Part shown: positions 504-64,000 of the stretch, piece after piece
Layout: each line of letters begins with the position of its first letter
Position numbering within the stretch: position 1 is the first letter of the stretch
Source: Raja brachyura
Lineage: Eukaryota
Direction: 5' to 3'
Length of the DNA: 64,000 nt
Assembly: GCA_963514005.1 (NCBI GenBank)
Contig: OY740783.1
Span: 128,898,001 to 128,962,000 of the forward strand
Notes under the pieces: generated by a model
The model's input: the letters and a program-made list of their open reading frames with translations, nothing else
What the model was told of the DNA's origin: nothing
The model's database searches: none
Position numbers and translations under genes: made by a program

Positions 504-519
504 TCAGTCTCGACCATTT
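504..519 (-). pseudogene. Copy 0 terminal coding exon, (R)NGRD*
   Basis: Acceptor atgtccattgcag|A AAT GGT CGA GAC TGA, phase 2. It has 16 coding nt, the same as the plus copies, and shares the upstream intronic 12-mer gtacaaattacc (560-571, minus) with 15781 and ~40993. Confidence 0.65.
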
Positions 520-660
520 CTGCAATGGACATAAAGAACATGACCTGGGTGAGTGGGTGGGTAATTTGTACAAATATGACCACTCAGTGAATGCCAGCAG
601 AAATCCTTGACGGGGGCTTGGTCCGGGACTTCAACTGAACTCTTCAGAACGTAGACTCTT

Positions 661-850
661 CGGCGGCGCAGTGGCGCAGCGGTGGAGGTGCTGCCTTGCA
701 GTGTCAAACAACCGGATAGATCCTGACTACGGGTGCTGTCTGTTTGGAGTGTGCACCGCGTGGGTTTTCTCCGGGAGCTCCGTTTCTCCAGGTTTGTTGG
801 TTAATTGCTGATGTAATCTCGCAAATTGTCCCTAGTGTGTCGCATAGTAC
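661..850 (+). mobile_element. tRNA-derived V-SINE (HE1-like)
   Basis: tRNA-like head gtggcgcagcggtggaggtgctgcc followed by V-domain-like core tgtttggagt...gcgtgggttttctccgg. A minus-strand head fragment of the same family lies at 1-66. Confidence 0.75.
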
Positions 851-859
851 TATTGTTCA

Positions 860-1420
860 TCCTTCCCACTAGATCCTCGGTCCCCTAGTATTTATAGGAG
901 ATTGTTTTTTGTCTTCCTTAGTGAAGACATTCCTTAGTGGGACCTACATTTTTCTTGACAAATGTTTTCTACTTCACACACTCTACAGAAGATTTTACAG
1001 TCCGTTTTTTTCACCGTAAGCTTTCTCTCATGCTCCAATAACCCCTTTGGCCTCCTCTATTCAATTCGAAATTTCTCGCAGTCCTGTGTGCCTCTCCCTT
1101 GGATTAGCCTGTCCTTAATTTCCTTTGTTAGCCACCTTGATCCTTCTTCCCTGTTTTATGTTTCCGCCAGACATGGATGAACAATTGTAATTCATCCATT
1201 CGATCTTTAAATCTTTGCCATTGCATCTCCACCGTCAACTCTAATAGTACCATTTGCCAGTCAATCCTTGCCAATCCCCCGTCTCCTACCGTCAGTTTCC
1301 TATCTTTAAATTCACGTCCCCTAGTCTCTGAATTAAGCGTGTCGCTCTCCATCTTAATGCCGAATGCCACCATATTATGGTTGCTATCCCAAACGGCTTT
1401 GCACAACTGGATACGCGACC
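860..1420 (-). mobile_element. CR1-clade LINE ORF2 fragment
   Basis: ORF 1128-1406 (SNHNMVAF...LARIDWQMVL...QWQRFK) resembles the CR1 post-endonuclease region also seen at 57287-57508. Confidence 0.7.
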
Positions 1421-3330: not shown

Positions 3331-3432
3331 CTCACTTTGTCACATAATATAAAACGAACCACATCACTAACAGGGCAAGGATTGACAATCCTAGTGGCAT
3401 GCACAAGATCAAAACGGGGGACATCTGTGGAA
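3331..3432 (-). pseudogene. Copy 0 transmembrane exon, (V)PQMSPVLILCMPLGLSILALLVMWFVLYY; no charged residue
   Basis: Polypyrimidine acceptor ctctctcattctctattcag| and donor gag|gtaagt. Aligns to the TM exons at 14857 and 40068. Restoring 1 nt gives ...YY(R)DKV with a phase-2 end; as it stands it reads VTK*. Confidence 0.8.
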
Positions 3433-3597
3433 CTGAATAGAGAATGAGAGAGGTCAAACCAGATTCGAAGGTTTTTCCATAACCTAGGTGAGGACCTTTC
3501 CTCTTCTCAGTACTAAATAATCTATGCATTAAACCGCGACCCATGGTCCGAGATTCTTCAGTCAGGGGAAAGATCCTCCCTTCATGTACACTCTCAA

Positions 3598-4795: not shown

Positions 4796-4915
4796 CGGGT
4801 GCGAACCGCAGCCGGAGCTCACGCTGGGACAGATGGATTAATAGGGGGAGTACGTTGTGAAAGTAACTGTACTCATCCGGTTTGTTGATCACAACCGGAC
4901 ACAGTACTGTTGTCA
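4796..4915 (-). pseudogene. Relic 3' third of an additional V-B exon (CPVVINKPDEYSYFHNVLPLLIHLSQRELRLRFAP)
   Basis: Aligns to the F-G region of V-B. The donor is mutated (g|ataagaaatc vs g|gtaagaaac). The downstream intron (4680-4795) is homologous to those after the other V-B exons. Confidence 0.7.
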
Positions 4916-5142: not shown

Positions 5143-5544
5143 CAGCTGTGACCCACAGGCGGACCTCACTCTGCGTCAGATGGATAAACGGCGGGTGTAC
5201 TGCGGGGTTATGGGTTGGGGGCCATGCAGGGCGGAAGTAATCCGGTTTCCTGATATCCACCAGACACAGGTAGTCGTCACTATCCTCCCCACTCAGCTGC
5301 TTTATCCTGGTTGAGGCGCTTCCCCGCTTTGGGTTCCCGACCAGCTGGAACCGAGTTGCACCGTTCTCCGCCGTCCAGGATCCATCAGCTTGGGGTCTGA
5401 ACGCGACGATGTGCCGGTAGGGGTCCTTCCTCATCCATGTGACTTTGTGTAGAGTGTGGTCGAATGCAGGCGGTGGGAACACACGGGGTAACGTCCCCTC
5501 AGTCCCCTCAGTCCCAGTCACCACTGAGACATTCACGACAGCAG
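5143..5544 (-). pseudogene. Copy 0 V-set Ig exon B (402 nt, open frame, B-strand Cys replaced by Arg)
   Basis: ttcttcactcag|CT...GCTG|gtaaga, phase 1-1. Reads AAVVNVSVVTGTEGTEGTLPRVF...VTWMRK...RFQLVGNPKRGSASTRIKQLSGEDSDDYLC, with V-set W, RF and DxxxYxC motifs. Confidence 0.85.
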
Positions 5545-8170: not shown

Positions 8171-8448
8171 CTCTTACAGTAAGACATGTTGGAACCACAG
8201 AGTGAAGTTTTCCAATGTTGAGTTCCACACGGCATCAATACATAGCATCGTCGTCTTCCAGGCTCAGTCGCTCCACCATTATCGAGGCATCCCTCTGCCT
8301 GGGGTTCCCCACGAATCTGAACCAACCACTTCCTGTCGCCGGCGTCACTTCTTCGCCGCTGCAGCGGTCAGGACTTAGATATGTACAGTTAAACACAAGG
8401 TGGTCACCCCCTGATTTCCTCCTGTACCACAACACGGAGCCGGTGAGG
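8171..8448 (-). pseudogene. Copy 0 V-set Ig exon A (Siglec-15-like), 5' end truncated by the gap, in-frame stop
   Basis: LTGSVLWYRRKSGGDHLVFNCTY...FRFVGNPRQRDASIMVERLSLEDDDAMY*CRVELNIGKLHSVVPTCLTVR, donor g|gtgagg. TGA at 8235-8237 where paralogs have Arg, probably CpG decay. Confidence 0.85.
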
Positions 8449-12420: not shown

Positions 12421-13162
12421 TAACTTCTTATAAACACATTGGAGCCGGTCGTGATACCAGGGAGTTAGTTCCGCGGAAGGCGAGCCGGTCCTAAAGCAGG
12501 GCCAAGTCGGAGAACACTCGCAGCCGCGCTGCCGAGCGAGAACAATGGCCGCGTGGGGTCGGGTGGGGTCGGGGGGAGGGGGGGGGGGGTGGCTGAAGGG
12601 CGGGGGTTCCTGCTCTGATTCCTCTCCAGTTAATCCGTCTGGACAGTGCGCTCGTCGACTAGAGGAGACGCCGGCCCTGGTCCACATTCAATTACAGGTG
12701 GATTGTGTAAACCGAGAAATAGGAAGTTGGTGCTCACCTTGTTGGAATTATTCTCCAACTATCAATGGAAACCGAGGCGCCCAGTCGTAAAGGAGGTGTC
12801 GGTGCCCAATCCCCTGTGGGCGGTTCTCCCTCTCGGTGTGGAGTTCACCGCTTCACACATTGAATATTCCCCGTGGAGAACAGTGTTGGGATCCGGGGAG
12901 GCGCGGGTTCGCTGTCGCTCACTCTCTCGCTCTCAGGGCAGCGCCGAGGGAGAGCCGCGCTGTCAGAGGTGCAGAGTGGCCCTGATCTGGAGCCACCCAA
13001 GAATGTGTCCTGTCCCCGGCGCCCTCTGACCCGCCTTCCCTGGGACCATCACCATGAGCTCCACACTGGGCACCGCCTCCACCCACTCCCACAGGGAGAG
13101 GTCGGTACAAGACGTTTCACCCACAGAACGTTGAGACATTCCGGTGTCTATCCTTCCCTCAG

Positions 13163-13557
13163 CTCCCGGCGGGAAGTGGTGACAGGGACGGAGGGGGCTT
13201 CGACCACGTTACCCTGTGTGTATCGATAATCCCAGTATCACCGCACCGCCCTCACGGTCACATGGATGAGGAAGGATCATCACCGACACATCGTCACGTT
13301 GAGACCCCAAGCTGATGGATCCCGGGCGACGGTGAACGGAGCAACTCGGTTCAAGCTGGTCGGGGAGCCAAAGCTCGGAAACGCCTCAACCAGGATAAGG
13401 AAGCTGAGTGTGGAGGACAGTCACGGCTACCTGTGTCTGGTGCAGTTCAGCAAAGAGGAAAACTACGATGCGAGAAAGGACGTCGAACAAAAGTTCAGGA
13501 GCAGCGTACAGCCCCCGTACATCCATCAGTACCAACGTGAGCTGCAGGTCACACCCG
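13163..13557 (+). pseudogene. Copy 1 V-set exon B (7-nt deletion plus TAA stop)
   Basis: ccttccctcag|CT...CCCG|gtaaga; 395 nt vs 402 nt in paralogs (tgtctca missing); LPCVYR* with TAA at 13227-13229; VTWMRK...EDSHGYLC. Confidence 0.88.
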
Positions 13558-14856
13558 GTAAGAAACCATCACCACATTCTGCCGTGTACATCGAAGGTTC
13601 AGATGGAAGGAGGAGAGCAGGACCAGGAAGCCCTGTCTCTCAGGACTCAGTGGGCGCAGCCTCGCATCTGGAGGGTCAGATACAACAGAGAAAAGTCAAA
13701 CATAGTTGATCAATCTATTGGAGTCCTTTGGCGAGGTGAGGAGTTGATTGCCTAAGAGGGAACAAGGTGCTGTGGTACGTTTGGATTCTCAGAAGGATCT
13801 AGGTTGGGTCCCAGCCAGGAGTTTGGGAACCAGATGCGAGAAGGCGGCATTAAGTCAACGCACTGTCGGGGATTGAGAAGCAGTTATCGAGCAGAATGTA
13901 GAATGAAATATCTGGATCTCTGTCACGTTGAGAGTCTGCGTTGCGAGGTACTTCAGAGATTGGTTCTTGGTCTCAACTATTCATAGTCTGCATCAGTGAG
14001 TTGATTGAAGGGGGTGAAATTGTCAGGTCTGATGATGGAGGAAGTGCCTTGGGACTGTGAGAGGGCAGGAGGACACGGAGATTCGGGAAAGGTGGACAAG
14101 TTGAGCGAGTGGGTGGGAGCATAATGTGGAATAAGATGTGGCAAATTATCCACACGGCTGAATAAACATAAATCCAGTGTTTATTAAATTGTGAGTGATC
14201 GGGTAGTGTGGATGATCAAAAGGACCTGAGTGTGCTTGTTCTCATGTCAATAAAGGATGATGTACTGATGTGGAAGAGTCGAGAAGGGCAATAGTTGTTC
14301 AGGTTTTATCAAGAGAGGATTTATATTCAAGGCTTGAGATGTTTCACTGCAGTTATATAAGGATCTAGCGGGACCTCACCTGCAGTACTGTGTCGGACTT
14401 TGCTCTTCTTAACTACAATAAAGCCACGATTAGTGTGGAGCGAGTGTAGTGAAGATTCCGTCACTGTTTCTCGGAAGGGCAGGCTGACTGAAGATCAGGG
14501 GAGATTGAGTAGACCAGAGACCGTGGAGAATGCAGGTATAGGAACATTGAGCAGAAAGAAAGCTACTGGGGGACTCGATAGGCCAGGTAGCATGTCTGGT
14601 AAGAAATTGACGAATGAAAATTCATATCGAGACCTTACCTCAAAACTGGACAAAACGACGTCTTTGGATTTCCTTCTACAGTTGCCTGACTTCCTGTGCG
14701 CTGTCAGCAGGCTGTTATTTGCTCGAGCAGATTAGGCCTGTATTCTCCAGAGTGTAGAGAATGAGAGGTGATCTTAGTGAAGCAAATACCATTTATACAT
14801 TGTCGATGGCTCCCCTTTCCCATTGACCACTCTGACCTCTCTCGCTCTCTCCTCAG

Positions 14857-14956
14857 TAACACAGAATTACATGGGTCTGATCCTGTGCATCCCTCTAGGA
14901 TTGAAAACCGTTTTCCTTTCAGTGATGCGTGTTGTCTTCTACCGTGACAAACTCAG
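14857..14956 (+). pseudogene. Copy 1 transmembrane exon with Lys, (V)TQNYMGLILCIPLGLKTVFLSVMRVVFYRDKL
   Basis: ctctctcctcag| ... cag|gtatgt; 100 nt, phase 1-2; AAA Lys codon at 14904-14906. Confidence 0.82.
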
Positions 14957-15034
14957 GTATGTAATATTGCTTTTCTATGCCTGGAATATAAACTCAATGG
15001 CCTTTGCGGTGTGATTGGAAAAAGTGAGGTTTCC

Positions 15035-15265
15035 TAGACCGCGCCAACCATCGATCATCCATGCACTAGTTCTATCCTGCACTATAGGGGGCGTTTGCAG
15101 AGGACAATTATCCTACAAACCCGCACGTATTTGGGATATGGAGGGACAAAAACCATGCGGTCACGGGGAGCACGTGGAAACTCCGCACAGACAGCACCCG
15201 TAATCAGGATCGAACCCGGGACTCTGCGCTGCAAGGCAGCATCTCTACAACTGCGCCACCGTGGT
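15035..15265 (-). mobile_element. V-SINE (HE1-like); orthologous copy at 40245-40475
   Basis: ggatcgaacccggg...ctgcgccaccgtg is the reverse-complemented tRNA-like head. Confidence 0.75.
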
Positions 15266-15827
15266 ACCCCTGTCGTGTTGGCAATATATGGTTCAGGTGC
15301 ATCATGTACCTACAGATGGAAGAACAGCTTCTTACCCGCTCAGACGATTTGAGAAACCCCTCAAAAGATAAGAATGTATTCCCGATCATCCATTCTACAT
15401 TGATGGAGCCCTTGCCCTCTGCCCTTTCTCTGTAAGCCTATATTCTGCACGGCTTGGCTCTATGGAATAATTTATCTGGATGACACGCGAAACAATGTGT
15501 TTTCCTCGTACCTTTGTCAAGGTGACGATAATAAACCAATACCAATACCTTGCTTCAGGTCAGACAATCCTCCTCACTGTCAACACAACGACCAATATAC
15601 GTGTCCCCTGTTAAGTAAATCACCTGTTTCGCATATTGAAGTCCACCTCAAATTTAGTTGTCAAACGCTGACATTGACAATAACGTCTCCCCTCTGAAGA
15701 ATTTCGTTCAAATCTCCGTCCGAATCACTTCACAGATTTAAATGACGGCTGTGAATGGTGATGCCAGAAATTGTCACGTGGTACAAATTACCGAGGCTTG
15801 TTTTAATTGGTCTTGTTGTGTCCTCAG

Positions 15828-15843
15828 CAAGAATGGTGCCTGA
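15828..15843 (+). pseudogene. Copy 1 terminal coding exon, (S)KNGA*
   Basis: ttgttgtgtcctcag|C AAG AAT GGT GCC TGA; phase 2 matches the TM exon; candidate AATAAA at 16007-16012. Confidence 0.65.
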
Positions 15844-18800
15844 TCCATCCGAGGAAGCTGAGCAGACCAGTGTTCCGACCGCAATGTAACCTGCCTCACA
15901 ATGAAGTCCGCCGATCCCACCTGCTTTTGCGGTCTGGCTGATTTTGTCGACCTTTGGTTGTCAATCATATTAATTCTCCGACTCGCTTTTAATCTGTGTG
16001 TAATATAATAAAATGCAGTACTTCAAGTTCAAAGGAAAGGTTTTGTACACTGAGAGGGTTTGATATCTGGAATATGCTCGGAAACAAAGTGGTGAAAATG
16101 AGATGTACGATAGACGTTTAGACGCATGAACAGGCTCTTAATTAAGAAATAGTTGGAAGGAAAGACAAAGCGTTGCACATTCTCAGTTGGTTAGCAGGGG
16201 ACCGGGCAGGAAGCGTCACCTATCCATGTCCTGCAGAGTTGCTGCCTGATCCGCTGAGTTATTCTAGCACATCGTGTCTGTCTTTGGTAAACACCGGTAT
16301 CAGCAGTTCCCTTTTATTACCAGTTGGAAGGATATGGATCTAATTGGGACCAACTGGATTAATGTGCATAGACAAAGATGGTCATTTTGATATTGTTGGC
16401 CGAAGGGCCAATTTCCTCACTGTACAATTCCATGATTCCAGAAGCACGTCCAAACTTCCCTGCCGTGGCAATCCATGGATCCTGACTAACTTATTTCTTG
16501 TCCCTTTCTTAGTAGTGCTCTGCTTCGTAATCTCAATGCTGGATTTAGCACGCAGGGAACACAAGCTTATTATTAATGCAGTTTGCTTATTTTAAAATAT
16601 TTACAACCTTCCTACAACCTTTATCGAACTTTTGGTTGTCAATCATATTAACATATTAACCTTCGAAGTAAATTTTAATGGAAGTGCGATAAATCGAAAA
16701 TGCTAATTAAATTCACTTATGCAATACACGGAGAACTTAAATTTTGAATTCAGTATGCTTAATTTCGTATATGTACAAGTCTTTAAATATATTTGAATGG
16801 GAGAGCAATATGGAACAACATCTAAAATGGTCATAAAATTCTGCTGTGCTAAAATTATTTGGTTTGCTTTAATTGGAGGTTTACCTTTAATTCAATGACG
16901 TTCTGAATTGCTTGTACCATTTGCAAAGGACCATTCGGCCCATTGGGTCCATGGCCACACCGAGCATTTGACTTATCTCCAGTTCTGTTTCTTTGTTACC
17001 TGTTATCTTGCACAAATCTCAGTCCATCCCCCCACCATTCTTCAGCCAATCACTGTCGCGCTTGATCTCAGTTTTGAGACACAGCATTGAAACTCCGTCG
17101 GTTCAGAGAATCCACGACCATACATCGATCATCCGGGCACACTAGTTCCATTTACTCATCCACTCGCTATACACCAGGTGAAATAGACAAAGGCTAATTG
17201 ATCTACAGACCCGCACGGTCTTTGGATGTGGGTAGAAACCGAGGCACCAGGAGAAAATCCTCCAGCCAGAACAGCACAGACAGGAGCTCAGTTTGACAAG
17301 TTGGTGCTTGCTTTTACAATCAGAGAACATGCAAACAGGCCTTTCGGCCCCAGCCGTTGATGTTGTCCAAGATGCCCCACCTCATTTGGGGTGGGGCATC
17401 TTGGGCCCAATTCCAATGAAACTCAAATCACTAATCCCGTGTAATTCCATTTACCTGTCCCAACCAGACCTTACGCCTTAGAGATAAAGCATGACGCCCG
17501 TACTAATTAGAGTATCCGCCTTAAATATATAAATTGACGGCGATCACCAGCCTTCAATGGTGGATAAACAATAATTCCATAGATTCGTCGCCCTCTAGTA
17601 AAATACATTCATCCTCATCTACTTTCTAGAGGTACGTGGTCTTATTCTGAGGCTACGGCGTCTGGTCCTAGATTCGCCCACTAGTGGAAACATCCTCTCC
17701 ACTCTATTCAGGTCTTTGACTATTCGATCAGTTTTAATTAAGTCCCTGCTCATCCTTCTAAGCTTCCCGTTTCCTATTTCCCCGCTGTTTTCCGATTACT
17801 GAACGATCCTCCCACAAACTAGGTCTTTAGTCACGATTTTACAAGCTAGATAAATGTGGACAAATTCTCGCAATGAAGTCCGCCGATCCCACCTGCTTTT
17901 GCGGTCTGACTAACTTTATCGAACTTTGGTTGTCAACATATTGATTCTCCGACTCGCTTTTAATTTGTTAATGTTACACGTCCGTTTACTAATTTCCCCA
18001 GGTTACAAAGTCAGTTTCAAGGGAGCACGTTGATGTGCCCCCCAGTGGCTTTAAAGCGAGTGAGGGACCTGCGGTCCGGTGAGTTTAAAGGGAGGGTGGG
18101 AACATGAGCTCAGTTTGCCAAGTTGTTGCCTGCTTCTAGAGTATTAGAACTTGCAAAGAGGCCCTTCGGACCCACCCTTTGATGCTGCTCCAGATTCCCC
18201 CTCTAAGATCGACCCATTTGCCTGCGTTTGACCCATGTCGCTCTAAATCATTTCTACCCATCACTCTCAACGTTCCCTTTCTGAGTCCGTGTGTTCCCCC
18301 AAGGAGGTACCGTGAGAATACAGAGCCTCGCTGAGAGATCGAGGGAACCGGTTCCAGGGTTTCTATAATGGGGCACTGAACGTCAGAGACAACTAAATAA
18401 TCACTCCGCAAAAAGACACAACGTTCTGGAGCTGCTAAGCACCTCAGGCAGGCATCTCTGGACGATGTGGATAGCTGACGATTCGGGAATAGCGGAGTGC
18501 ACTCGATTGGCCAATTAACTAATTCCGTTGCTGTGTCTTATAATCTTATGATCGAATACATATATGTCGAAATACCGTTTGGAAGTCATAATTGCATCTG
18601 CTTCCATAGCTTCATTCCAGATGCAGACGAACGTCTGTGAAAATATTGTTCATCGATTCCCTCTTGCATCTCTCCCGTCTCACAAACCTCTGCCCTCTAG
18701 TTGTAAGATAATCTGTCTTGCTAGAAATACTGCGAGCTTTCAGTTTATCCAAGCCCCTGATAGTGTACACCTCAATGAAGTCACCCCTCAGCCTCGTGTA

Positions 18801-19954
18801 CTCCAAAGGAAAATGTCCCAGCCTATCTTACCTCACCCTATAACTGAAGTCTGCAAGCCCATGTAATGACATACTTCCTATAGCTGATAGGCCACAGTAT
18901 TCCGAATGTGGTCTCAACAATGAATTGTAGAACTGAACCATGATATTACAAATTTTGTATTCAATATCATTCTGGGAAAATGTTCTGCACCATTCTCCAT
19001 GGCTCTATCAATTCCCGTCTTGGTTTAACACAATGAAGTGGCCTTTTTTTTTACACTGACAGAGTTTGCAATCTGGAATATGCTATTAAAAAAAAGGAGG
19101 TGAATATTAGATACAAATACTTGCTCGGTAGACGTTTGGACAAACATTTAATGAGGCAAAAGTTGGAAGGTTAGACAAAGTGCTGGAGTTTCTCGGATCA
19201 GGATCCCGACCTGATGCGTCACCAATCCAAGTCCTCCAGAGCTGCTGCCTGACCCGCTGAGTTACTCTACCACGTTGTGTCTATCTTTGGTATTGACCGG
19301 CATCTGCAGTTCCTTCTCTTTACACGTTGGAAGGATATGGATCTAATTCGGACAAACAACATTCATGTACACAGTTTAAAATGTTCACATCCACATGGTG
19401 GGCCGAAGGACCAATTTCTCCACTGCAATTCCCTGACACGTTGACTCCAGAAGCATGTCTAAATCTCCCTGCTGTGGCAACCCCTGGATCGAACTAACTT
19501 CATTGATGTCCTCTTCTTCGCAAACCTCCAATCTGCTTATAAACCTCAAATGATGCATTTAACATACAGGGAACGCAGGGTGCTTAATTTAGAATATTTG
19601 CAACCTTCGAATCAAAATATAATGAATCGAATCTAAAATGCTATTTCAATTCACTTATGCACTACATAGAAAATAATCTGTATTTTTAATGCAGTATACT
19701 TAATTTAGATTATATATTTATGCAAATCTTTAAGTATTTGACTAGAAGGGGTGTATGGAACATAGTGTAAGTTGTTTACTAAATTCAGCGGTACAATGAT
19801 TATTTGGTTTGCTTTAATTGGAGGTGTTATTTTAATTCCATTACTTTTTCAATTGCTTATCACGTTTCCAAAGGGGCTATTTCGCCCATTGGGTCCATGC
19901 ACACACCGAGCATTCGATTCCTCTCCCGTTCGATTCCTTTGATACCTACAACAG

Positions 19955-21185
19955 GTCCACGGACGATGCCATCGCCCTAGCCTTACAATACTGCCTACAA
20001 CGCCTGGATAACAGCTGCACATAGGTCAGACCTATTCAAAGGCGACAGCTCTGCCTTTAATACCATGATAGCTTTCCAAACTCATCACCAAAGTCCCGGG
20101 ACTTGGGGTCAGCACTCATCTCTGCCAATGGATCCTCGACTTCCTCAACAAGTGACCCCAATCAGTAAGGATTGGGGACAAATCATCCTCCACTAGAATC
20201 CTCAACATGGGGACTCCACAAACAAAGCGTTCTCAGCCCCATTCTTTATTCCTTGGACACCCATGTAGCCATGTATACATCTAATTCAATTTATAAATTT
20301 GAAGACAGCGCCACTAGTGTGGGCCGGATATAATATAATGATGAGATGGAGTAGAGTTGGGAGATTAACAACTTCGTATCTGGCAATGTCTCTTAATGTC
20401 AGCAAGACAAAGGAAATCGCGATCGACTTCAGGAAGCGAAGCGATAAACAAACTCCAGTCTGCCTTGATGGTGCTGAACGAAAGATGGTTGAAAACTTCA
20501 AATTCCTATGAGTCCAGCAACTTCTCCTGGACCACTCATATTGAAGCAATGGCCAAAAAGGCACACCAGCGCCTCTATTTCCTAGGAAGGCTTAGGAAGT
20601 TCGGCATGTCCCCTACAACTCTCACTAACTTCTACAGATGCTCTTTGGAAAGCATTTGATCATGTTGGGTCACAACTTGGTTTGGGAGCAGCTCCATCCG
20701 AAACCGCAGGAAATTGCAGAGAATTGTGGACGCAGCCCAGACCATCACACAAACCAACTTCCCTTCTATTGACTCAATTTATACCTCATCCTGCCTCAGC
20801 AAGGCTATCAGCATAATCAAGGACGAGTCGTACCCTTGCCACCCTCTTCTCCCCTCTCCCTTCAGGCAAAAGTTAAAGTAGTGTAACAACGCACACGACC
20901 AAATTCAGGAACAGTTTCTTCCCAGTTGTAATCAGGCAACTGAGTCATCCTGCCACAACCTACTGAAATATTATCTACCTTTTTGATGACCCTAGGAGGC
21001 TCCTTGACCGGCTTTACCTTGCAATAAACGCTATTCCCTTATCATGAATATATACTGTGTAAATGGTTCGATTGTAATCATTCAACCTTTCTGCTGACTG
21101 GTTAGGATGCAACACATGTTTTTCACTGTTCCTCGGTACACGTGGCAAAAACTAAACTAAACTAAACTAGACTAAACTAAACTCG
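19955..21185 (+). mobile_element. Rex1/Babar-type LINE, RT 3' half (paralog ~48970-52975 with nested inserts)
   Basis: LNVSKTKEIAIDFRK; AKKAHQRLYFLGRLRKFGMSPTTLTNFYRC; (aaact)n tail. Confidence 0.8.
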
Positions 21186-21264
21186 CATGTTAATGCCGGC
21201 CACGAGGAATAGCATCCACTTAGTCCCCTGTGTGGCCTGTCCGTCTCACACTGCATTACTTTGG

Positions 21265-21633
21265 GAGGAAGTGAATAATTCCTGGATCTTTCACTCCCGA
21301 CACTCATTGCAGTGCTTCCCTGTAGTCAAGGTAGGATTCCCTTGGAGGCAAAGTTTGCTGCTGTGCCCTTCATTTCTAATCTGACTTCGCTCTCTGCTCT
21401 GCCTCCTTCTTCCTTTGAGTGATGAATGTCAGTGTTGCAGTTTGGTGTTTGAACATTTTGCAGCAAATTAAGAGAGCAACTTCTGCATTTCAGTGCCAAG
21501 AAAAGAAAATTGCGTGAGACCACCAATTGAGCTGTTGGTGAGGAAGTGACTTTGGGGTTGTCTTTGCACAGTTCTGCTGTCGCTCTCACTGCAGCTTGAC
21601 AGCGTTTGATTCATTCTTTAGATTCACTTCCTC
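21265..21633. promoter_or_regulatory. Cluster of three PU.1/ETS-type GAGGAAGTG boxes, overlapping a relic leader exon
   Basis: Exact 9-mers at 21265(+), 21540(+) and 21625(-). All three are retained in unit 2 at 53056, 53331 and 53416; a further copy is at 23617(-). Confidence 0.45.
21475..21600 (+). pseudogene. Relic 5'UTR/leader exon (LWGCLCTVLLSLSLQ); paralog at 53265-53390
   Basis: gagcaacttctgcatttcagtgccaagaa matches the 5'UTR of the real leader (24437). The translation resembles RVCLCTVLLSVSVH, but there is no ATG or donor. Confidence 0.55.
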
Positions 21634-23454
21634 ACATAAACTGTAAAGTCCAGAAACAATGTTCACAGCCTCAGGGTGAATGGAAACAAACAGACGGGTA
21701 CCCGGGAATGAGATACAGCCTGTATTGCACTCAATGGGATTAATGTGGGCTCAGTGTGAATGGTTGGCTGATGGTTGGTGATGAAACAGGGTTCAACCAA
21801 AAATGTCTGCCTCCAAACAAATGTTGTAAAATATCAGTTCCCGTTGTCCCAACGGGACATGGGGCAGAGGGGTAACAGGTGGATCGCGTTAACAGACAAT
21901 AGACAATAGACAATAGGTGCAGGAGTAGGCCATTTGACCCTTCGAGCCAGCACCGACATTCAATGCGATCATGGCTGATCATCCCCAATCAGTACCCCGT
22001 TCCTGCCTTTACCCCATATCCCCTGGCTCCGCTATTTTTAAATAAACACACCGGGCAACGCAGGGAAATAAAAAAGCAGAACGCACTATATCCCGAATGA
22101 GGGTCGTTCCATACAACACGCATCCTCCGCATAGCACCCGTTAATCCAGTATTGTTGCATGCAATATCGTGCACAGCTTGAGTTGCACCGTTTCACCACA
22201 TCTACACGTCTGGAAGATTGAAATGGTGCAAAGTCCAATCTTCAACGCAAGCCGTCTTCCGTTATGCTGGATTTATACTTGTGCGTCCACGGGGATTGTT
22301 CTTGAGGGAGATTAAGTTCAATGAAACCTGTCTGCCTGATTCATGTAAGTACATCGGACTCCTCAAAAACTTTCTATTCTTCCCCTACTATGACGAAAGT
22401 CTTACTCGCTACCTTCAACGTTCTCCCATAATCAGTCACATCTTCCCATTCCCACCCACTTCCGCTTTCCGTAGAGACCACACTCTCCGCAAATCTTTGG
22501 TTCGTCCAACTCCTGAGGGCCTGTAACATAAAGCCCCACTAATAGTATAGCTAGTGCTGACTGATGACAGCAAGCGTGCCACACGCCTTCTTCGCTACAG
22601 TAGCTAACTATCACCCCAAGAGCACAGTGTCATTGTACCTCAGGATCTGTCTGCTTTGCAGCGCACCACAGATGATGATGTTTCCACTGGTGGTAGAGTC
22701 TAGGACCAGGGGCCATGGCCTCTAAATAACAGGACGCGTCTTTAGAAAGCAGATGAGAATGGATTTATTTAGTCAGAGGTTGTGGAATCAGTGGAATTCA
22801 ATGCCACTGAAAGCTGAGGAGGCTGTGAATTGATATTGTTAAGACAGAGATTGATATTTATCAGTACGGGTGTCAGGGTTATCGGCAAAAGGCAACATAA
22901 TGGGATTGAGAGGGAAAATAGATCAATTGATGTAAATGGATGAGGTGGGGCGGGTGGGGAATGTGGTGACGTACTTTAAGTGCAATGTGACGAATACAAC
23001 CGTATTGTATTGTATTGATATTGTCCATACGTAAGTGTCCTTCAGAAGGTGGTAGTGAGGCGCCTACTTGACCCACCGAGCCCTTAGTGAAGGTTATCTG
23101 GTGACGGCTAAGATGTAAGAAAAGGCGTATGGAGATCGCCATTCATAAAACGAAGTGAGACTCTCGATAAGCAAGAGGAGAAAAGGTGACAGAAAGCAGG
23201 CGGGGATGTGGAGAGAGAATTAACCGCAGAGCAGTCGCGCTGTTATTGACCGGAGGTGCGAGATGAAGGGGCCGACTGGTTTCCAGTAGGGAGAAGATCT
23301 AATGGAGGGATTTGACATTGCGTACAGGGAGGTTGTCCCATTGGTGGACAGAGAAGAGATGACGATAGAGGATGGGGATGATTGGCAAAGGAACCAAGTG
23401 TTTTTCTGGGAACCATTAATGTTAGTTTTGTAGTTTAGCAACTCCTGAACATTC

Positions 23455-23600
23455 TGCAGCAAATGAAAAAAGCAACTTCTGCATTTCAGGGTCTAGAAAT
23501 AAACAGCCGTGAGAGAGGAGCTCACAGCACTGAGGTGCTGGTGGACAAATGTCTGTGGGGTTATCGTTGCTGGGTCCCGATTGCAGGGTAACAACGGGTG
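23455..23600 (+). pseudogene. Second relic 5'UTR/leader cassette
   Basis: Homologous to 21460-21670 (gcaacttctgcatttcag; ctgtggggtt; gattcattcttta..ttcacttcctcac). Deleted in unit 2 (junction ~54652). Confidence 0.45.
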
Positions 23601-24509
23601 ATTCATTCTTTATGTTCACTTCCTCACACAAACTGGAAACCCCAGAAACAGAGTTCACAGCCGCAATATTCTTGGAATCAAAGCGAGATGAGATGAACCC
23701 TTGAATGAGATACAGCCTTTGATGGGTTGAATTGGATGAAGGTGGATTAATGTGAATGGGTCAAATTAATCCTACCTAAGCATACCACACACTTTAGTCG
23801 CCACGCTGACTACCCGTGTCGCCAATTTGTGTATAATATTAACTAGTGTGCCCTTGGGCTCTTTGTTTTACAGCACTCACCAGGGCCCCGTCGTTCACAG
23901 TGTAAGTCATACCCTGGTATTACTTTTTAAAATGCCTGGCCTTGTATTCCTTAGCATATTTTCCCAGTTGATCCAGATGTTCATTAATTTTGTCTGCCAG
24001 TGCTATTACATGTAAACATTCTCTGACGTTCTTTGCATTCCTCGAGGGTCTCTAGGATTGTGGCGATTGGTACTTGTTGGCATAGTGTACACATGTCGGG
24101 TTAGAAGGCCCGTTCCTGCACTACATCGCTCTATGGCGATAATGCTGGGGCACGAACATGCAGATCCGGGATTTTGTGCGAAAACAAAATTGCTGGAAAA
24201 AGATCAGCGGTTCAGGCAACGCTTGTGGATCAAAATGGGCAGACGACGTGTCGGGCCTTGACCTCTTTATTCAGACGCCGTCTGTCAATGTCCCTTCACG
24301 GATACAGCTTAACCCGCTTAGTTCCTCTACGACTTTGGTTTTTGCTCATAACCCTAATCAGCTCAGTATAAAATGATTAATTATCAGTACTTATAGCAGT
24401 TCCTCAAAGCTTTGCCGGAAATGCAGAAATACTTGGAGCAAGTTCTGCATTTCAGCGTCAAGAAGCTCAGAGCAGTGGGTGAGGTGGACTCCACACTGAA
24501 GTGTTGGCG

Positions 24510-24570
24510 ATGCACTCTCACCGGGTTTGTCTCTGCACCGTCCAGCTCTCCGTCGCAGTCCACGGTTGCA
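24510..24570 (+). pseudogene. Copy 2 leader exon MHSHRVCLCTVQLSVAVHGC; donor GT>GG
   Basis: Paralog of 58737-58797; a|ggaggt instead of a|gtaggt. Confidence 0.7.
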
Positions 24571-25050
24571 GGAGGTGTTTTCTGTTGACCTTGTTATCTC
24601 CTCCTTGTATCGTCATATCTCCCCGCGTGCCGGTTCGCACTCCGTCCGCACTCCAGCAGTTTGTACTTTTGCTGAGGTCTGTCAATGGGTGATGTGGGGC
24701 GGGTGGGGACTGCGGTGATATTGTCCATACTGAAGTGTCCTTCAGAAGGTGGTGGTGAGGACGCCTCGTGGCCCACCGTGCCCTTGGTGAAGATTATCTG
24801 GCGACGGCTAAGATGGAGGAAAATGCATATGGAGACCGCCATTCATAAAACAGAGTGAGACTCTCGATCAGCAAGAGGGGAGAAGGTGACAGAGAGCAGA
24901 CGGGGATGTAGAGAGAGAATTAACAGCAGAGCAGCTGTGATGTTATTTTCCGGAGATGCGAGCTGGAGGGGCCGACTGGTTTCCAGCTCTACTAAAGTCG
25001 GGAGGAGATCTGATGGAGGGATTTAACATTGTGTACATGGAGATTGTTCC

Positions 25051-25260
25051 CGTAGATTGATGTTGCATGTTAACCAATCACACGCCAGCCAGCATCTCTA
25101 ACTCCACCCCAACTGTAATACTGATACTAATACTAATGCTCTGCACCAACAGTGGGGGCAGCCAGGAGGTGTTGATAACTAACCATCCTCCATGCTGTTA
25201 AGTTTTAGTGCTGATTATAGATGTGTTTGAATCGAATACTGAGTCTGGAAGTCATTTACT
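25051..25260 (+). repeat. 5' LTR
   Basis: 210 nt; about 17 differences from the 3' LTR by manual count; terminal TG and CA both mutated. Confidence 0.92.
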
Positions 25261-37215: not shown

Positions 37216-37617
37216 CTCCCGACGGGAATGTCTCAGTGGTGACTGGGACGGAAGGAGCTTCGGCCAAGTTACCCTGTGTGTATCGATAATCCCAGTATCA
37301 CCGCACCGCCCTCACGGTCACATGGATGAGGAAGGATCCTCACCTACACATCGTCACGTTCAGACCCCAAGCTGATGGATCCCGGGCGACGGTGAACGGA
37401 GCAACTCGGTTCAAGCTGGTCGGGGAGCCAAAGCTCGGAAACGCCTCAACCAGGATACGGAAGCTGAGTGTGGAGGACAGTGACGGCTACCTGTGTCTGG
37501 TGCAGTTCAGCAAAGAGGAAAACTACGATGCGAGAAAGGACGTCGAACAAAAGTTCAGGAGCAGCGTACAGCCCCCGTACATCCATCAGTACCAACGTGA
37601 GCTGCAGGTCACACCCG
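37216..37617 (+). pseudogene. Copy 2 V-set exon B (402 nt, TAA stop at 37287-37289)
   Basis: APDGNVSVVTGTEGASAKLPCVYR*SQYHRTALTVTWMRK...EDSDGYLC...ELQVTP; phase 1-1 splice sites intact. Confidence 0.88.
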
Positions 37618-40067: not shown

Positions 40068-40167
40068 TCACGCAGAGTTACATGGTTCTGATCATGTGGA
40101 TCCCTCTAGGATTGAAAACCGTTTTCCTTTCAGTGATGTGTGTTGTCTTCTACCGTGACAAACTCAG
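40068..40167 (+). pseudogene. Copy 2 transmembrane exon with Lys, (V)TQSYMVLIMWIPLGLKTVFLSVMCVVFYRDKL
   Basis: ctctctcctcag| ... cag|gtatgt; 100 nt, open frame; AAA at 40115-40117. Confidence 0.85.
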
Positions 40168-41039: not shown

Positions 41040-41055
41040 CAAGAGTGGTGACTGA
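41040..41055 (+). pseudogene. Copy 2 terminal coding exon, (S)KSGD*
   Basis: ctgttgtgtccgcag|C AAG AGT GGT GAC TGA. Confidence 0.65.
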
Positions 41056-58736: not shown

Positions 58737-58797
58737 ATGTGCTCTCTCCGGGTTTGTCTCTGCACCGTCCTGCTCTCCGTCTCAGTCCATGGTTACA
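58737..58797 (+). CDS. Copy 3 leader exon, signal peptide MCSLRVCLCTVLLSVSVHGY
   Basis: gcgATG context, hydrophobic core, small residues near the predicted cleavage site, phase-1 donor a|gtaggt in frame with the exon at 59339. Confidence 0.75.
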
Positions 58798-59338: not shown

Positions 59339-59722
59339 ATGTTTCCAACAGTAATTGGTCAATATCCGGTGCTGATGACGTGTTTGCCGTGGAAGGGGGA
59401 TTCGCTGTGTTGCCGTGTACGTTCACCCACCCAGGCATTGATCACAACCTCACCGGCTCCGTGCTGTGGTACAATAAGTCACCATTTAATCCCCGTTTTT
59501 TGTTTAACTGCACGTATGCCGCTCCCGGCCGGTCCCGATGCGATGAAGTGGCACAGGAGGCCGGAGGGAGTCGTTTCAGATTCGTGGGGAACCTCAGAGA
59601 GGGAGATGCCTCTATAATGGTGGAGCGACTGAGATGGGAGGACTGGGATATCTACCGGTGCCGCCTGGAGCTCAGTGGTGGGAGATTTGAATCTGTGATT
59701 CCAACGCAGCTGACTGTGGAAG
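59339..59722 (+). CDS. Copy 3 V-set exon A, intact; sialic-acid-binding Ig-like lectin 15-like domain
   Basis: Long polypyrimidine tract + cag| ... g|gtgaga; 384 nt, phase 1-1. VSNSNWSISGADDVFAVEGGFAVLPCTFTHP...LWY...FNCTYAAPGRSRC...RFRFVGNLREGDASIMVERLRWEDWDIYRCRLE...TQLTVE. It matches Siglec-15 motifs recalled from memory (AVLPCTFTHP, extra Cys pair, RFRLLGNP, YFCRVE). Confidence 0.88.
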
Positions 59723-59901
59723 GTGAGAACAATGTTCAGAGACTGTCTCTGCCAGCGTGTTCCCACGGTGCAATGCTGATCATTACACGTGGATGCTTCA
59801 ATTCAATGATTCAATTATACTGTATTCTCACACGTACCTATGTACAGTGAAATACTTTATTTTGCAGTCAACCCGGAAAATCATGTAGCAGAACTCACCT
59901 T

Positions 59902-62900
59902 GGCCCTTCGAGCCAGCACCGCCATTCAATGTGATCACGGCTGATCAACCCCAATCAGTACCCCATTCCTGACTTCGTCCCATATCCCCTGACTCCGCTA
60001 TCAAGCTCTCTCTTGAAAGTATCCAGAGAACCGGCCTCCACCGCCATCTGAGGCAGAGAATTCCACAGACTCACAACTCTCTATGTGAAAAAGTGTTTCC
60101 TCAACTCCGTTCTAAATGGCTTTCCCCTTATTCTTAAACTGTGGTCCCTGGTTCTGGACTCCCTCAACATCGGGAACATGTTTCCTGCCTCTAGCATGTC
60201 CAATACCCTTAATAATCTTATATGTTACAACAAGATCCCCTCTAATCCTTCTAAATGACAGAGTGTACAAGCCCAGCCGCTCCATTCTCTGAGCATATGA
60301 CAGTCCCGCAATCCCGGGAATTAACCCTGTAAACCTACGCTGCACTCCCTCAACAGTAAGAATGTCCTTCTTCAAATTAGGGGACCAAACCTGCACACAA
60401 TATTCCAGGTGTGGTCTCACTAGGTCCCCGTAAAACTGCAGAAGGACCTATTTGCTCCTACAATCAACTCCTCTTGTTTTAAAGACCAACATGCCATTCG
60501 TTTTCTACACTGCCTGCTGTACCTGCATGCTTACTTTCATTGACTGATGAACAAGGACCCCCAGATCCCGATGTACTTCCCCTTTCCCAACTTGACACCA
60601 TTTGGATAATGTTACTTTGCATCCCTTCATCTAAATCATTGAAGTATATTGCAAATACCTACGGTCCCAGCACCGAGCCTTGCGGTACCCCAATAGTCAC
60701 TGCCTGCCATTCTGAAAGGGACCAGTTAATACCTACTCTTTTGTTCCTGTCTGCCACCCAATTTTCTATCCAAGTCAGCACTCTATCCCCAATACCATGT
60801 GCCCTAATTGTGCCCACTAATCTCCTTTGTGGGACCTATTCAAATGCTTTCTGAAAGTCCAGCTACACAACATCCACTGGCACTCCGTTGTCCATTTTCT
60901 TGGTTACATCATCAAAAAGCTCCAGAATCAATCAATTTATTCATCACATACAGAATAAAGTGCAGAAGATTTGTCAATCATCATTTCCCCTTCGTAAAGC
61001 CATGCTGACTCGGACCTATCCTGTAAATGCTACACAAATGTGCGGCTATTTCACCTTTTATAATTGACTCCACCATCTTCCCCACCACCGATGTCAGGCT
61101 AACTGATCTATAATTCCCTGTTTTCTCTCTCCCGCTTCCGTAAAAATTGTGATAACATTAGACACCCTCCAATCCACAGGAACCGATGCTGAATCTATAG
61201 AACACTGGAAAATTATCACCAATGCATCCACGATTTCTTGGGCAATTTCCTTAAGTACCCTGGGACGCAGACCATCAGGCCCAGGGGATTTATCAGCGTT
61301 CACTCCCATCAATCTACCCAGCACCATTTCTTCCCTAATGTGGATTTCCTTCTGTCCCTCCGTCACCCCAGATCCCATGGTCACGAGTATATCAGGAAGA
61401 TTGTTTGTGTCCTCCTTAGTGAAGACGGATCCAAAGTACCTGTTCAACTAATCTGCCAATGAAATAAGACCAAAGAGAACAAGTTGTCCTACAACTTTAC
61501 GCTGTGCACGCCATACGCAAGACGAAGAATAACTCACCTGCCATTTCCTTGCTCCTCATAATAAATTCGCCTTTTTCAGTCTTCAGGGGGCCAACTTTGG
61601 CCTTAACTATTTTTTTCCTCTTCACATATCTCAATAAGCTTTTACTATCCTTCTTTGTATTGGCTGGCTTACCTTCCTGCTCACTTTTCTACGTTGGACA
61701 TCTTCTCTTTTATTTTTATACTGTCCTTGACTCCCCTTGGCAGCCACGGTCGCCTCTTATTCCCTTATTCCCTTGGAATGTTTCTTCCTCTTTTGAATGA
61801 ACTGATCCTGCACCTTCTGTATTATTCCCAGAAATCCATGTCATTGTTGTTCCACTGTCATCCCTGCTGGGTTATATTTCCAGTGAACTTTGGCCAGCTC
61901 CTCCCTCATGGCTCCATAGTTCCCTTTATTCAATTGTAACACTGACACCTCCGATTTACCCTTCTCCTTGTCCAATTGTACGTTAAACGACCGTATTATG
62001 GTCACTGCCTCCTAGTTGTTCCTTAACCTCAAGTTCCTTTATCAAATCTGGTTAATTACATAACAGTATATCCAGAATGGTCTTCTCCCTGGTAGGCTCC
62101 AGTACAAGCTGCACGAAGAATCCATCACAAAGACAATCCACAAACCCCCCTTTCTTGGGGTCCAGTGCCAATTTGATTTTCGCAGTCTACCTGCATGTTG
62201 AAATCTCCCATAACAACTGCAGCATTACCTTTACTACATGCAAATTTTAACTCCTGATTCAACTTGCACCCTATATCCACATTACTATTTGGGGGCCTGT
62301 AGATAAGTCCCATTAGGGTCTTTTTACCGTTACAATTCCTTACTTCTATCCATACTGACCCCACATCTCCTGTTTCAATGTCACCCATTTCAAGGGACTG
62401 AATTTCATTCCTCACCAACAGAGCTACCCCACCCCCTCTGCCCACCTGTCTGTCTTTTCGCTAGGAGGTATACCCTTGAATATTCAGTTCCCAGCCCTGG
62501 CCCTCTTGCAGCCATGTCTCTGTAATTCCCACAACATCATACTTTCCAATTTCTTACTGAGCGTCAAGCTCGTCCACTTTATATCTTATACTTCCCGCAT
62601 TCCTATACAACACTTTGACCTCCGTATTCACCCCCACCCCCACCCCCCCCCCCCCCCCCCCGCACGGCTCGAATTGGCCCTGACGTTACTCTCTTATCCC
62701 TTCTCGAACTTTCCTTCCCATTAATTCGAGAGTCTTTTGTAATTCTTCCTGTACTCACTTCCCCTTCAACACCATCTGTATGCTCACAATTTCTAAATCC
62801 CTTCCCCCACTATTTAGTTTAAACCCACACGTGTAGCCCTAGCAAACCTGCCTGCCAGAATGTCGGTCGCCCTCCAGCTAAGCTGTAACCCGTCCCATTT

Positions 62901-63916
62901 GTACAGGTCACCCCTACCCCAGAAGAGATGCCAGTGGTCTATAAATCTAACTCCTTGCTCCCTGCACCAGCCCCTCAGCCACACATTCAGATCCCCTATC
63001 TCCCTGTTCCTGTCCTCACTAGCACAAGGTACTGGAAGCAATCCAGAGATAACCACCCCAGAAGTCCTGCTTTTCGGTCTGCTTCCTAACTCTCTTAACT
63101 CACGTTGCAGAACCCCCTTCCTCTTATTCTCGATGTCGTTCGTGCCGACATGCACAACTATTGTTCACCTTCCCATCGAGGATGTTCTGAATTCGGTTCA
63201 TGACATCTTGAACCCTGGCGCCAGGGAGGCAACAGACGATCCTCGAGTCTCGCCTGCCGCCGCACAATCTCCTGTCCGCAACGCGGACCATGGAGTCGCC
63301 CACCACTATGGCACTGCCCGACGTCGGTCTCGCCGGTCGAGTCCCATCTCTGGGATTGGAGCCACCTACATGTCCACTGCTCAGACTGGAAGTGTATTCT
63401 CCCCCGACAGTTCCCAAGAGGGTGTACTGTTTTCAATAGGCACAGCCACCTGGATCTTCTGCACTCCACGGTTACCACCCATTCTCGCAGTCACACACCT
63501 TGGTTCTTCCCGTATCCTCTACGTAACCACCTCACTGCAGGCCCTGTCCAGGAAACTCTCGTTTTCCCGCATGGCCCTGAGGTCAACCAGCTGCTTCTCC
63601 AGTGCCCCAACACGGTCCTTCAGGAGCTGAACCTGGACGCACTTGCCACAGTTGTAGCAGCCAGAGGCAACATCCGTGTCCCTGGGCTCCCACGTTCTAC
63701 AAGCATCACACTCTCATCTTCCCCGTAATGTGTTCACCGCGTCCTGTCAGCACCAGCTTTTTGCGTAGTCTCCTCTCCTCAGCCTCCTCGCCGAAGACTC
63801 TCGAGCCAAAGACTCACACTTTACTCACAAGGCCGCTCGCTCACTGCCGCTCTCCCAGAGCAGCCTTGCTTATATTCACTAATACATTGCCAAATTTACA
63901 AATCAAATTCCTTAGT
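59902..63916 (-). mobile_element. Near full-length decayed CR1 LINE (5'UTR, ORF1 Zn-finger + SGNH esterase, ORF2 EN + RT) in the intron after V-A of copy 3
   Basis: CYNCGKC; IVVGDSMVR, CLPGARVQDV, HVGTNDI; RGGGVALLV, YRPP, MGDFN; KSPGPDG; RPHLEYCVQVWSP. The terminal microsatellite tail is missing. Confidence 0.92.
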
Positions 63917-64000
63917 ACCTTGTTGGAATTGTTCTCCAATTATCAATGGAAACGGAGGTGTCCAGTGCTAAAGAATATGTCGGTGCCCGGTGCCCAATCC

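Follow-up and report, generated by a model that had tools for sequence, protein, structure and literature searches.

A decaying, probably Siglec-15-derived cluster of tandem receptor genes in a skate-like genome

Introduction

The CD33-related Siglecs, the KIRs and the teleost NITRs form tandem multigene clusters with frequent pseudogenes, in which short-tailed forms with a charged membrane segment occur together with ITIM-bearing forms of near-identical ectodomain and the sialic-acid Arg is variably lost. Fish reportedly lack CD33-related Siglecs. Siglec-15 is usually counted among four conserved Siglecs, and its V-C2 build is given as fixed from fish to mammals in a survey without cartilaginous fishes (PMC7226832). 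The MDIRs are a multigene family of skates with activating and inhibitory forms, whose domains resemble those of CD300, TREM and pIgR (PMC3031540).

Here, we analyzed a window of 64,000 nucleotides, the whole stretch of DNA under study, which a preliminary description had interpreted as four tandem copies of an activating sialoglycan-receptor gene of a cartilaginous fish. Our analysis suggests that the window probably covers one end of a decaying cluster, in a skate-like genome, of tandem receptor genes derived from Siglec-15. The family shares with the CD33-related Siglecs, KIRs and NITRs the features listed above, and it differs from them in its origin from a Siglec-15-type V domain and in its ectodomain of 2 V domains. 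The assignment of the host to the cartilaginous fishes was borne out by the best protein matches, which were to skates (82% identity to Amblyraja and 78% to Leucoraja).

Results

Shared exon structure and layout of the copies

The receptor genes comprise 5 exon types with AG/GT borders, namely a leader, 2 V-domain exons (V-A and, after it, V-B), a membrane exon with a lysine (PLGLK) and the tail. The reading phases are as follows: (i) the g4 leader exon ends in phase 1; (ii) the g4 V-A exon has 384 nt and phase 1-1, and the junction 58797|59339 creates an in-frame codon; (iii) the V-B exons of g3 and g1 have 402 nt and phase 1-1; (iv) the membrane exons of g2 and g3 have 100 nt, phase 1-2 and the PLGLK motif; and (v) the tail exons of g1, g2 and g3 run from phase 2 to the stop codon. 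The cytoplasmic part consists of 9 residues contributed by the membrane exon and the tail exon (RDKLSKSGD in g3, whose tail is identical to the DKLSKSGD of Amblyraja P0001) and lacks tyrosine, as had been proposed. Splice sites, phases and exon order agree with those of RefSeq models from skates and rays (P0001–P0012, compared exon by exon), and the exon set and its order are alike in Amblyraja LOC116971356 (P0001), Leucoraja P0002, Rhinoraja P0003 and P0004, and Hypanus P0012. The canonical splice sites and mutually compatible phases of the preliminary description are thus confirmed at their places (Table 1). Its statement that the 5 exon types recur in 4 gene copies does not hold: stops, frame-breaking lengths and missing exons leave none of the 4 copies with all 5 exons intact within the window, with 4 exon types in g1, 3 in g2, 5 in g3 (3 of them damaged) and 2 in g4. 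Likewise, the membrane LGLK ascribed to the family is present in g2, g3 and the RefSeq homologs, and is replaced by LGLS in g1.

Table 1. Positions of the exons and of the duplicated unit in the window
Feature	Position	Strand	Remarks
g1 tail exon	504..519	-	One base, then N-G-R-D-stop; AG acceptor; stop at 506-504
g1 membrane exon, decayed	3331..3432	-	LGLS not LGLK; 102 nt versus 100 (2-nt frameshift); in-frame TGA at 3334-3332
g1 V-B exon	5143..5544	-	402 nt, open frame; Arg in place of the B-strand Cys (codon 5485-5483)
g1 V-A exon, 3' 278 nt only	8171..8448	-	Cut by N gap 8449-8648; in-frame TGA at 8237-8235
Tandem duplication unit	12464..25259	+	Matches 36508-59033 with 80-92% identity
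g2 V-B exon, broken	13163..13557	+	395 nt; 7-nt deletion near start; in-frame TAA at 13227-13229
g2 membrane exon	14857..14956	+	100 nt, PLGLK, phase 1-2
g2 tail exon	15828..15843	+	S-K-N-G-A-stop
g3 leader exon	24510..24570	+	Donor GT mutated to GG
g3 V-A exon, broken	35641..35999	+	359 nt versus 384; 26-nt deletion and indels of +3 and -2
g3 V-B exon	37216..37617	+	402 nt; in-frame TAA homologous to that of g2 (LPCVYR-stop-SQYH)
g3 membrane exon	40068..40167	+	100 nt, PLGLK
g3 tail exon	41040..41055	+	S-K-S-G-D-stop; AATAAA about 60 nt downstream
g4 leader exon	58737..58797	+	ATG, hydrophobic core, GT donor, phase 1
g4 V-A exon, intact	59339..59722	+	Cys26-Cys107, extra pair Cys57/Cys67, Arg108

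The copy g1 is 82–83% identical to Amblyraja P0006. Its V-B exon matches the Pfam V-set family with 33 bits and is 82% identical to domain 2 of P0006; the cysteine that g1 has exchanged for arginine is present in all V-B-bearing homologs of the alignment. The phase of the g1 tail exon is incompatible with the 102-nt g1 membrane exon. On the low side, the run of N (8449–8648) borders the remaining 3' part of the V-A exon, and on the high side it opens in a LINE, whose reverse-transcriptase open reading frame spans 8675–10027 on the + strand (Pfam RVT_1, E value 4e-39). The 5' part of V-A and the leader of g1 were not found between 8649 and 12464. Therefore, continuity or frame across the gap cannot be claimed, and we treat the g1 V-A as truncated at the gap.

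The copies g2 and g3 lie on the + strand, and the leader and V-A are absent from g2. Their V-B exons are 97% identical. Because the 2 copies have a stop codon in common, they would have arisen by duplication of a unit of ~24 kb that was already dead beforehand. The tail of a LINE abuts the 5' border of the g3 V-A exon. The history of the cluster would be one of duplication, transposon insertion and decay, which fits the birth-and-death evolution that had been proposed. In sum of these lesions, g1, g2 and g3, three of the 4 copies, are pseudogenes as judged from their sequence, a point that the preliminary description had missed.

The copy g4 is apparently intact as far as its sequence can be followed; its first 2 exons alone are inside the window, and the remainder would lie past position 64000. 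Its leader and V-A exons retain the ATG and the GT/AG sites and have lost none of the residues that are invariant or nearly so in the family alignment, and its V-A is 82% identical to that of Amblyraja P0001. Leader-like relics without an ATG were observed at 21559, ~23.5 kb and 53350. Neither inhibitory-type tail exons nor C2 exons were found within the window.

V-A is Siglec-15-like and V-B is a second V domain

Comparison with solved structures revealed that the best sequence match of the g4 V-A was Siglec-15 (7ZOZ; E value 4.7e-15), followed by CD33 (7.6e-6). The AlphaFold model of V-A (pLDDT 79.6) also had its best fold match in 7ZOZ (TM score 0.84, RMSD 2.4 Å), followed by other Siglec V domains. 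In a maximum-likelihood tree (a curated 72-row IQ-TREE, which replaced a FastTree of 199 domains in which the position of V-A was unresolved, with a support of 22), the V-A clade (100/99) joins the V domains of bony-vertebrate SIGLEC15 together with the first domain of the V-V-C2 genes of cartilaginous fishes (94/83). V-A is thus Siglec-15-like by sequence match, fold match and tree. A placement of V-A with CD22/CD33-like Siglec V domains was not rejected by the AU test (p = 0.33), and the tree taken alone is therefore supportive, not decisive.

The residues agree with this assignment. Besides the canonical cysteine pair, Cys57 and Cys67 of the g4 V-A align with the 2 extra cysteines of 7ZOZ, and the LPCTFTHP motif is a further likeness to Siglec-15. 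The C-R motif, in which an arginine directly follows the F-strand cysteine (the equivalent of human R143), occurs in V-A in g4 (Arg108), g3 and g1; several paralogs of other species have S, G, Q, N or H in place of this arginine. The membrane lysine lies in a PLG(L/I)K motif, with the PLGLK of g2, g3 and the RefSeq homologs aligned with the PLGIK of bird Siglec-15. The preliminary description had recognized V-A as Siglec-15-like from the F-strand arginine and the extra cysteine pair, and the structural matches, the tree (with the reservation of the AU test) and the residues all uphold it.

By contrast, the second domain is V-set and not C2, as was also anticipated. V-B matches the Pfam V-set family above the cutoff, with ~75 residues between its 2 cysteines, and in the tree it falls with the second domain of the V-V-C2 genes (93/75; the g3 V-B stop was read as X). 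By these sequence relationships, V-B is orthologous to the second V domain of the shark and ray V-V-C2 genes.

Alternative readings of the locus

It is hardly credible that all 4 copies represent functional genes in a family of activating receptors, as had been proposed. Nearly all exons retain their splice sites, and the membrane and tail exons of g2 and g3 are intact; however, in-frame stops interrupt the V-A of g1 and the V-B of g2 and g3, 3 exons have frame-breaking lengths (395 nt in g2 V-B, 359 nt in g3 V-A and 102 nt in the g1 membrane exon), the g3 leader donor is dead, g2 is without leader and V-A, and the structural cysteine of g1 V-B is gone. Four working genes would require assembly errors at more than 8 separate places. 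A related DNA, 1–4% diverged (relative A), has CGA (Arg) at the TGA of g1 V-A and is without the 2 extra bases at ~3344 in the g1 membrane exon, which would suit the view that the lesions are assembly or sequencing errors in copies that are really intact. We nevertheless regard this view as quite improbable: relative A differs throughout and thus represents another lineage, not a proof-read of the window, and it carries a +1 insertion of its own in the g1 V-A exon, behind 8201 (two runs). Moreover, the TAA is common to 2 paralogs that are ~92% identical over the duplicated unit, and it is therefore not a single read error; the larger lesions, that is, the 26-nt deletion, the LINE abutting an exon and the missing exons, are untypical of errors. 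The reading of g1, g2 and g3 as pseudogenes does extend to g4 in one possible form, in which this species has lost the entire local cluster to decay. All 3 assessable neighbors of g4 are dead, and there are the leader-like relics, but the 2 g4 exons have kept their start codon, splice sites and family residues, and we consider the death of g4 unlikely without being far-fetched.

A different alternative concerns the identity of the family, which might belong not to the Siglecs but to the skate MDIRs or to CD300/TREM-like receptors. In skates, the MDIRs form a multigene family that has both activating and inhibitory members, and V-B has weak pIgR matches (E value 3e-3). However, MDIR domains are characterized as CD300/TREM/pIgR-like (PMC3031540), no CD300 or TREM is among the 60 best solved-structure matches of V-A, which Siglec-15 heads by 9 orders of magnitude, and none of the close relatives is a protein named MDIR. 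On these comparisons with solved structures and named proteins, this alternative is very improbable, and we retain the Siglec-15-derived reading below.

Relatives in other cartilaginous fishes

The RefSeq models of the family are open predicted genes, in contrast to g1–g3 with their stops and frameshifts. In other skates and in rays and sharks, close relatives carry ITIM-like motifs in long tails, and P0021, P0025 and P0014 end in V-I-Y-A-x-V. The ectodomains of Leucoraja P0002, with a short tail and a charged membrane segment, and P0020, an ITIM form, are near-identical. The short-tail type alone occurs in this window, and ITIM forms were seen in other species; the family is thus not the purely activating one that had been proposed, and it resembles a family of paired receptors under birth-and-death evolution.

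Sharks and rays also have a V-V-C2 gene separate from the V-V family. In the tree, its first domain clusters with V-A and Siglec-15 and its second with V-B, and one representative, P0042, has a lysine in the membrane segment. These V-V-C2-TM(K) genes retain a Siglec-15-type C2 domain (Pfam Ig_2/I-set), which the family in the window lacks, and they are more likely to be the true SIGLEC15 orthologs. Compared with Siglec-15, the skate family (i) has a V-set second domain in place of C2; (ii) has a tyrosine-free cytoplasmic part of 9 residues; and (iii) occurs in multiple tandem copies, accompanied by pseudogenes and ITIM-bearing paralogs, and forms an elasmobranch clade of its own.

Discussion

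Our results indicate that sharks, rays and skates have an expanded Siglec-15-derived family with 2 V domains and with activating-type and inhibitory-type members, and that some members have retained the sugar-binding arginine and others have lost it. On balance, we lean toward the view that in elasmobranchs the Siglec-15 lineage, otherwise conserved and single-copy, became a rapidly evolving family of paired receptors with a V-V ectodomain, lysine-bearing activating and ITIM-bearing inhibitory forms, and repeated loss of the sialic-acid arginine. If so, cartilaginous fishes would have in this family a counterpart to CD33-related Siglecs, and the window would be the family's birth-and-death edge.

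Judging from the RefSeq models, intact members would be type I membrane proteins with a signal peptide, V-A, V-B and a membrane helix that has a lysine at its center, followed by about 9 cytoplasmic residues. By analogy with Siglec-15, for which the roles of the membrane lysine and R143 have been described (PMC7226832), we infer that the lysine may form a pair with an acidic residue in a DAP12/DAP10-type ITAM adaptor, which would make these members activating receptors. In an older survey, FcR-gamma was not found in the shark data of its time (PMC4016189). By the same analogy, V-A copies that keep the F-strand arginine would probably bind sialylated glycans. The replacement of this key arginine in several paralogs elsewhere means that such binding is not assured, and the preliminary description of the whole family as sialoglycan receptors is to that extent not supported.

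The preliminary description knew of no earlier account of this architecture and named an existing annotation of the V-V-TM structure as a ground against its reading; at the level of automatic annotation, predicted RefSeq models of the same build do exist. In the literature on chondrichthyan Siglec-15 and MDIR, we found no paper describing the V-V family. Public annotation names vary among "uncharacterized", "HAVCR1-like", "JAML-like", "sialoadhesin-like", "Siglec-12" and "Siglec-15", and this inconsistency suggests that the family has apparently not been recognized as one. Most of the gene-like sequence in the window is pseudogene, and annotation or functional work is best begun from g4 or from intact paralogs elsewhere. 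A match at 63504–63710 to a Narcine model's C-terminus falls within a LINE and probably derives from the transposon.

Exon arrangement in the window

The 64-kb window is vertebrate DNA with a G+C content of 46.5% and a single N gap (8449–8648), and ORFs of LINEs and LTR retrotransposons are abundant in it. The window's own V-domain ORFs served as queries to locate the V-type exons, and all searches used one exon at a time. The exons lie in four tandem loci, g1 on the minus strand and g2–g4 on the plus strand, and comprise leader, first V-domain (V-A), second V-domain (V-B), membrane, and tail types. All listed exons have AG acceptors and all but one have GT donors; the phases reported in the preliminary description (1; 1-1; 1-1; 1-2; 2-stop) match the intact exon versions. 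Self-comparison of the window revealed that 12464–25259 and 36508–59033 constitute one duplicated unit with 80–92% identity. Because splice sites, phases, and the duplicated unit agree, the exon types, order, and coordinates first described from the sequence are real and not due to chance.

Positions of receptor exons in the window
Locus	Exon	Position	Strand	Remark
g1	V-A type	8448..8171	-	V-domain ORF search
g1	V-B type	5544..5143	-	V-domain ORF search
g1	membrane	3432..3331	-	diverged
g1	tail	519..504	-	16 nt
g2	V-B type	13163-13557	+	V-domain ORF search
g2	membrane	14857-14956	+	PLGLK
g2	tail	15828-15843	+	16 nt
g3	leader	24510-24570	+
g3	V-A type	35641-35999	+	V-domain ORF search
g3	V-B type	37216-37617	+	V-domain ORF search
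g3	membrane	40068-40167	+	PLGLK
g3	tail	41040-41055	+	16 nt
g4	leader	58737-58797	+
g4	V-A type	59339-59722	+	V-domain ORF search

Identity of the two V domains

Among solved structures, the best sequence match of V-A was Siglec-15 (7ZOZ, E 4.7e-15), followed by CD33 (7.6e-6); in the alignment with 7ZOZ, both the canonical Cys residues and the additional Cys pair have counterparts, as does the Arg that follows the F-strand Cys. A fold search with an AlphaFold model of V-A (24 homologues, pLDDT 79.6) also placed 7ZOZ first (TM 0.84, rmsd 2.4 Å), followed by sialoadhesin, Siglec-7, Siglec-10, CD33, MAG, Siglec-8, and other V-set domains. The membrane motif is PLGLK, compared with PLGIK in birds. 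Sequence scores, fold, the arrangement of Cys residues, and the membrane motif in common with birds all agree in direction: V-A is Siglec-15-like, with the Arg and extra Cys pair originally noted. V-A and V-B each exceed the Pfam V-set threshold, and the second domain is indeed a V domain.

Searching 1.8 billion representatives with HMMER yielded 181 relatives, of which 30 were identified by name. In a curated 72-domain IQ-TREE phylogeny (130 columns), the elasmobranch V-A clade (100/99) groups with the V domains of bony-vertebrate SIGLEC15 and with the first domain of V-V-C2 genes from chondrichthyans (94/83), separate from CD22-like and “Siglec-12/13”-named shark domains, and the V-B clade (100/99) groups with the second domain of those V-V-C2 genes (93/75). 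Placement of V-A with the CD22/CD33-like group was not rejected by the AU test over these 130 columns (p 0.33); the tree supports the link between V-A and Siglec-15 without proving it. Siglec-15-type V domains have also multiplied independently elsewhere, with a tandem array of seven in a lungfish protein (P0018), two in a characiform fish (P0048), and two in axolotl (P0045), and these copies cluster by species.

Decay of the receptor copies

The receptor family in the window is mostly pseudogene. The four loci do share exon types, but the “four gene copies” of the preliminary description do not hold: g1–g3 are broken, and g4 has only its leader and V-A inside the window, the remainder lying past 64000. 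These two g4 exons are intact, with no loss of any residue that is invariant or nearly so across the family alignment.

Inspection of g1 revealed that (i) V-A is cut by the N gap, whose low side keeps 278 of the ~384 nt expected and whose high side opens in LINE sequence on the opposite strand (RVT_1, E 4e-39), with no V-A 5′ part or leader found from the gap up to 12464; (ii) V-A has an in-frame TGA at 8237–8235 (Y-stop-C-R-V-E-L); (iii) V-B has an open frame but carries Arg in place of the B-strand Cys, which is kept in every V-B-bearing homologue compared; and (iv) the membrane exon reads LGLS instead of LGLK, and is 2 nt too long with a TGA at the donor, which puts the tail exon out of phase. 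The V-B 3′ end and the start of the next intron are partly duplicated within the V-B-to-TM intron (4713–4904, minus strand).

DNA contigs from two organisms were aligned to window 3300–8400. Organism B, with few contigs, hardly differs from the window, which probably comes from it or from close kin; organism A diverges by ~1–4%, with many substitutions and indels. At 8237, organism A has the complement of C, giving CGA (Arg) where the window reads TGA, and it does not have the 2 extra bases of the membrane exon. Its V-A carries a +1 insertion behind 8201 (two runs, two samples), a lesion of organism A's own, since the window's frame there fits the Amblyraja protein; a 6-nt insertion in its membrane exon that would make a stop is weak (one contig, depth 2.6). 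g1 is thus disabled by different changes in the two lineages, as relaxed constraint predicts, which speaks against simple assembly error.

The g2 leader and V-A are absent from the window, and a 7-nt deletion and an in-frame TAA (13227–13229) disrupt g2 V-B. In g3, the leader donor is GG instead of GT, and V-A is 359 nt long, with a 26-nt deletion, two small indels, and a LINE tail abutting the exon. g3 V-B carries the same TAA as g2 V-B; thus, the ~24-kb unit was duplicated after its death. The first intron of g3 contains an LTR retrotransposon (25052–34321; reverse transcriptase, RNase H, and integrase ORFs in Pfam) with 208-bp direct repeats (25052–25259 and 34115–34321, 92.8% identical), interrupted by a LINE fragment at ~27.6–29.2 kb. 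A 170-bp direct repeat (34589–34758 and 36155–36324, 97% identical), whose first copy is in the intron upstream, flanks the broken V-A and hints at local partial duplication. Leader-like relics (C-L-C-T-V-L-L-S-L-S; 21559–21588, ~23480–23600, and 53350–53379) keep the upstream motif without ATG, 1–5 kb upstream of real leaders; they are probably what is left of additional dead copies or of promoter-leader segments that were duplicated.

Related receptors in other cartilaginous fishes

The nearest public proteins are from skates (Amblyraja radiata, 82%; Leucoraja erinacea, 78%; Rhinoraja longicauda, 67%), then rays; none of the closest matches is identical, and the window probably comes from a further skate. 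The same build is predicted by RefSeq in Rhinoraja (P0003 and P0004), Amblyraja (P0001, LOC116971356, whose tail DKLSKSGD is that encoded by g3), Leucoraja (P0002), Hypanus (P0009 and P0012), Hemitrygon (P0010 and P0011), and Narcine (P0008). A literature search found no paper describing an elasmobranch V-V Siglec-15-derived family; what is public of this architecture consists solely of automatic gene models under inconsistent names. The V-V-TM build, of which the preliminary description knew no account, is already annotated at that level, with the family unrecognised.

Other members, such as P0020, P0021, P0025, P0014, and P0016, combine an ordinary membrane helix with a long tail that contains C-T-Y-A-S-I/L repeats and ends in V-I-Y-A-x-V, a motif consistent with the ITIM signature; the sharks Mustelus and Heterodontus are among the sources. 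The ectodomains of the Leucoraja lysine form P0002 and ITIM form P0020 are almost identical, as is characteristic of paired receptors. Another residue takes the place of the key Arg in P0003, P0004, P0005, P0008, P0017, P0024, and P0030. Overall, the initial observation is confirmed in part and its interpretation supported in part: the Siglec-15-derived V-V receptor family is real, but it is not purely activating.

Exon structure, domain types, the conserved Lys, Arg, and Cys residues, duplication, and decay are direct observations. By analogy with Siglec-15 (PMC7226832), the membrane Lys would recruit a DAP12/DAP10-type ITAM adaptor, and the Arg-bearing V-A domains may bind sialylated glycans. 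A survey of early shark data reported no FcR-gamma and did not mention DAP12 (PMC4016189).

Shark and ray V-V-C2 genes (P0042, with a membrane Lys, P0044, and P0029) keep a Siglec-15-type C2 domain, whereas the window's family has none; they look like the true SIGLEC15 orthologues, and the C2-less family would have arisen from them. The skate MDIRs are described as multigene CD300/TREM/pIgR-like receptors (PMC3031540) and, going by that description, probably do not resemble V-A, whose 60 best solved-structure matches include no CD300 or TREM.

In addition, 63504–63710 (minus strand) is similar to the C-terminal residues 488–556 of P0022, a family model from Narcine bancroftii (E 4e-8). The match lies within or beside LINE-like ORFs, with a GDSL-lipase-like ORF at 62814–63152, and the C-terminal part of the P0022 gene model is probably transposon-derived.
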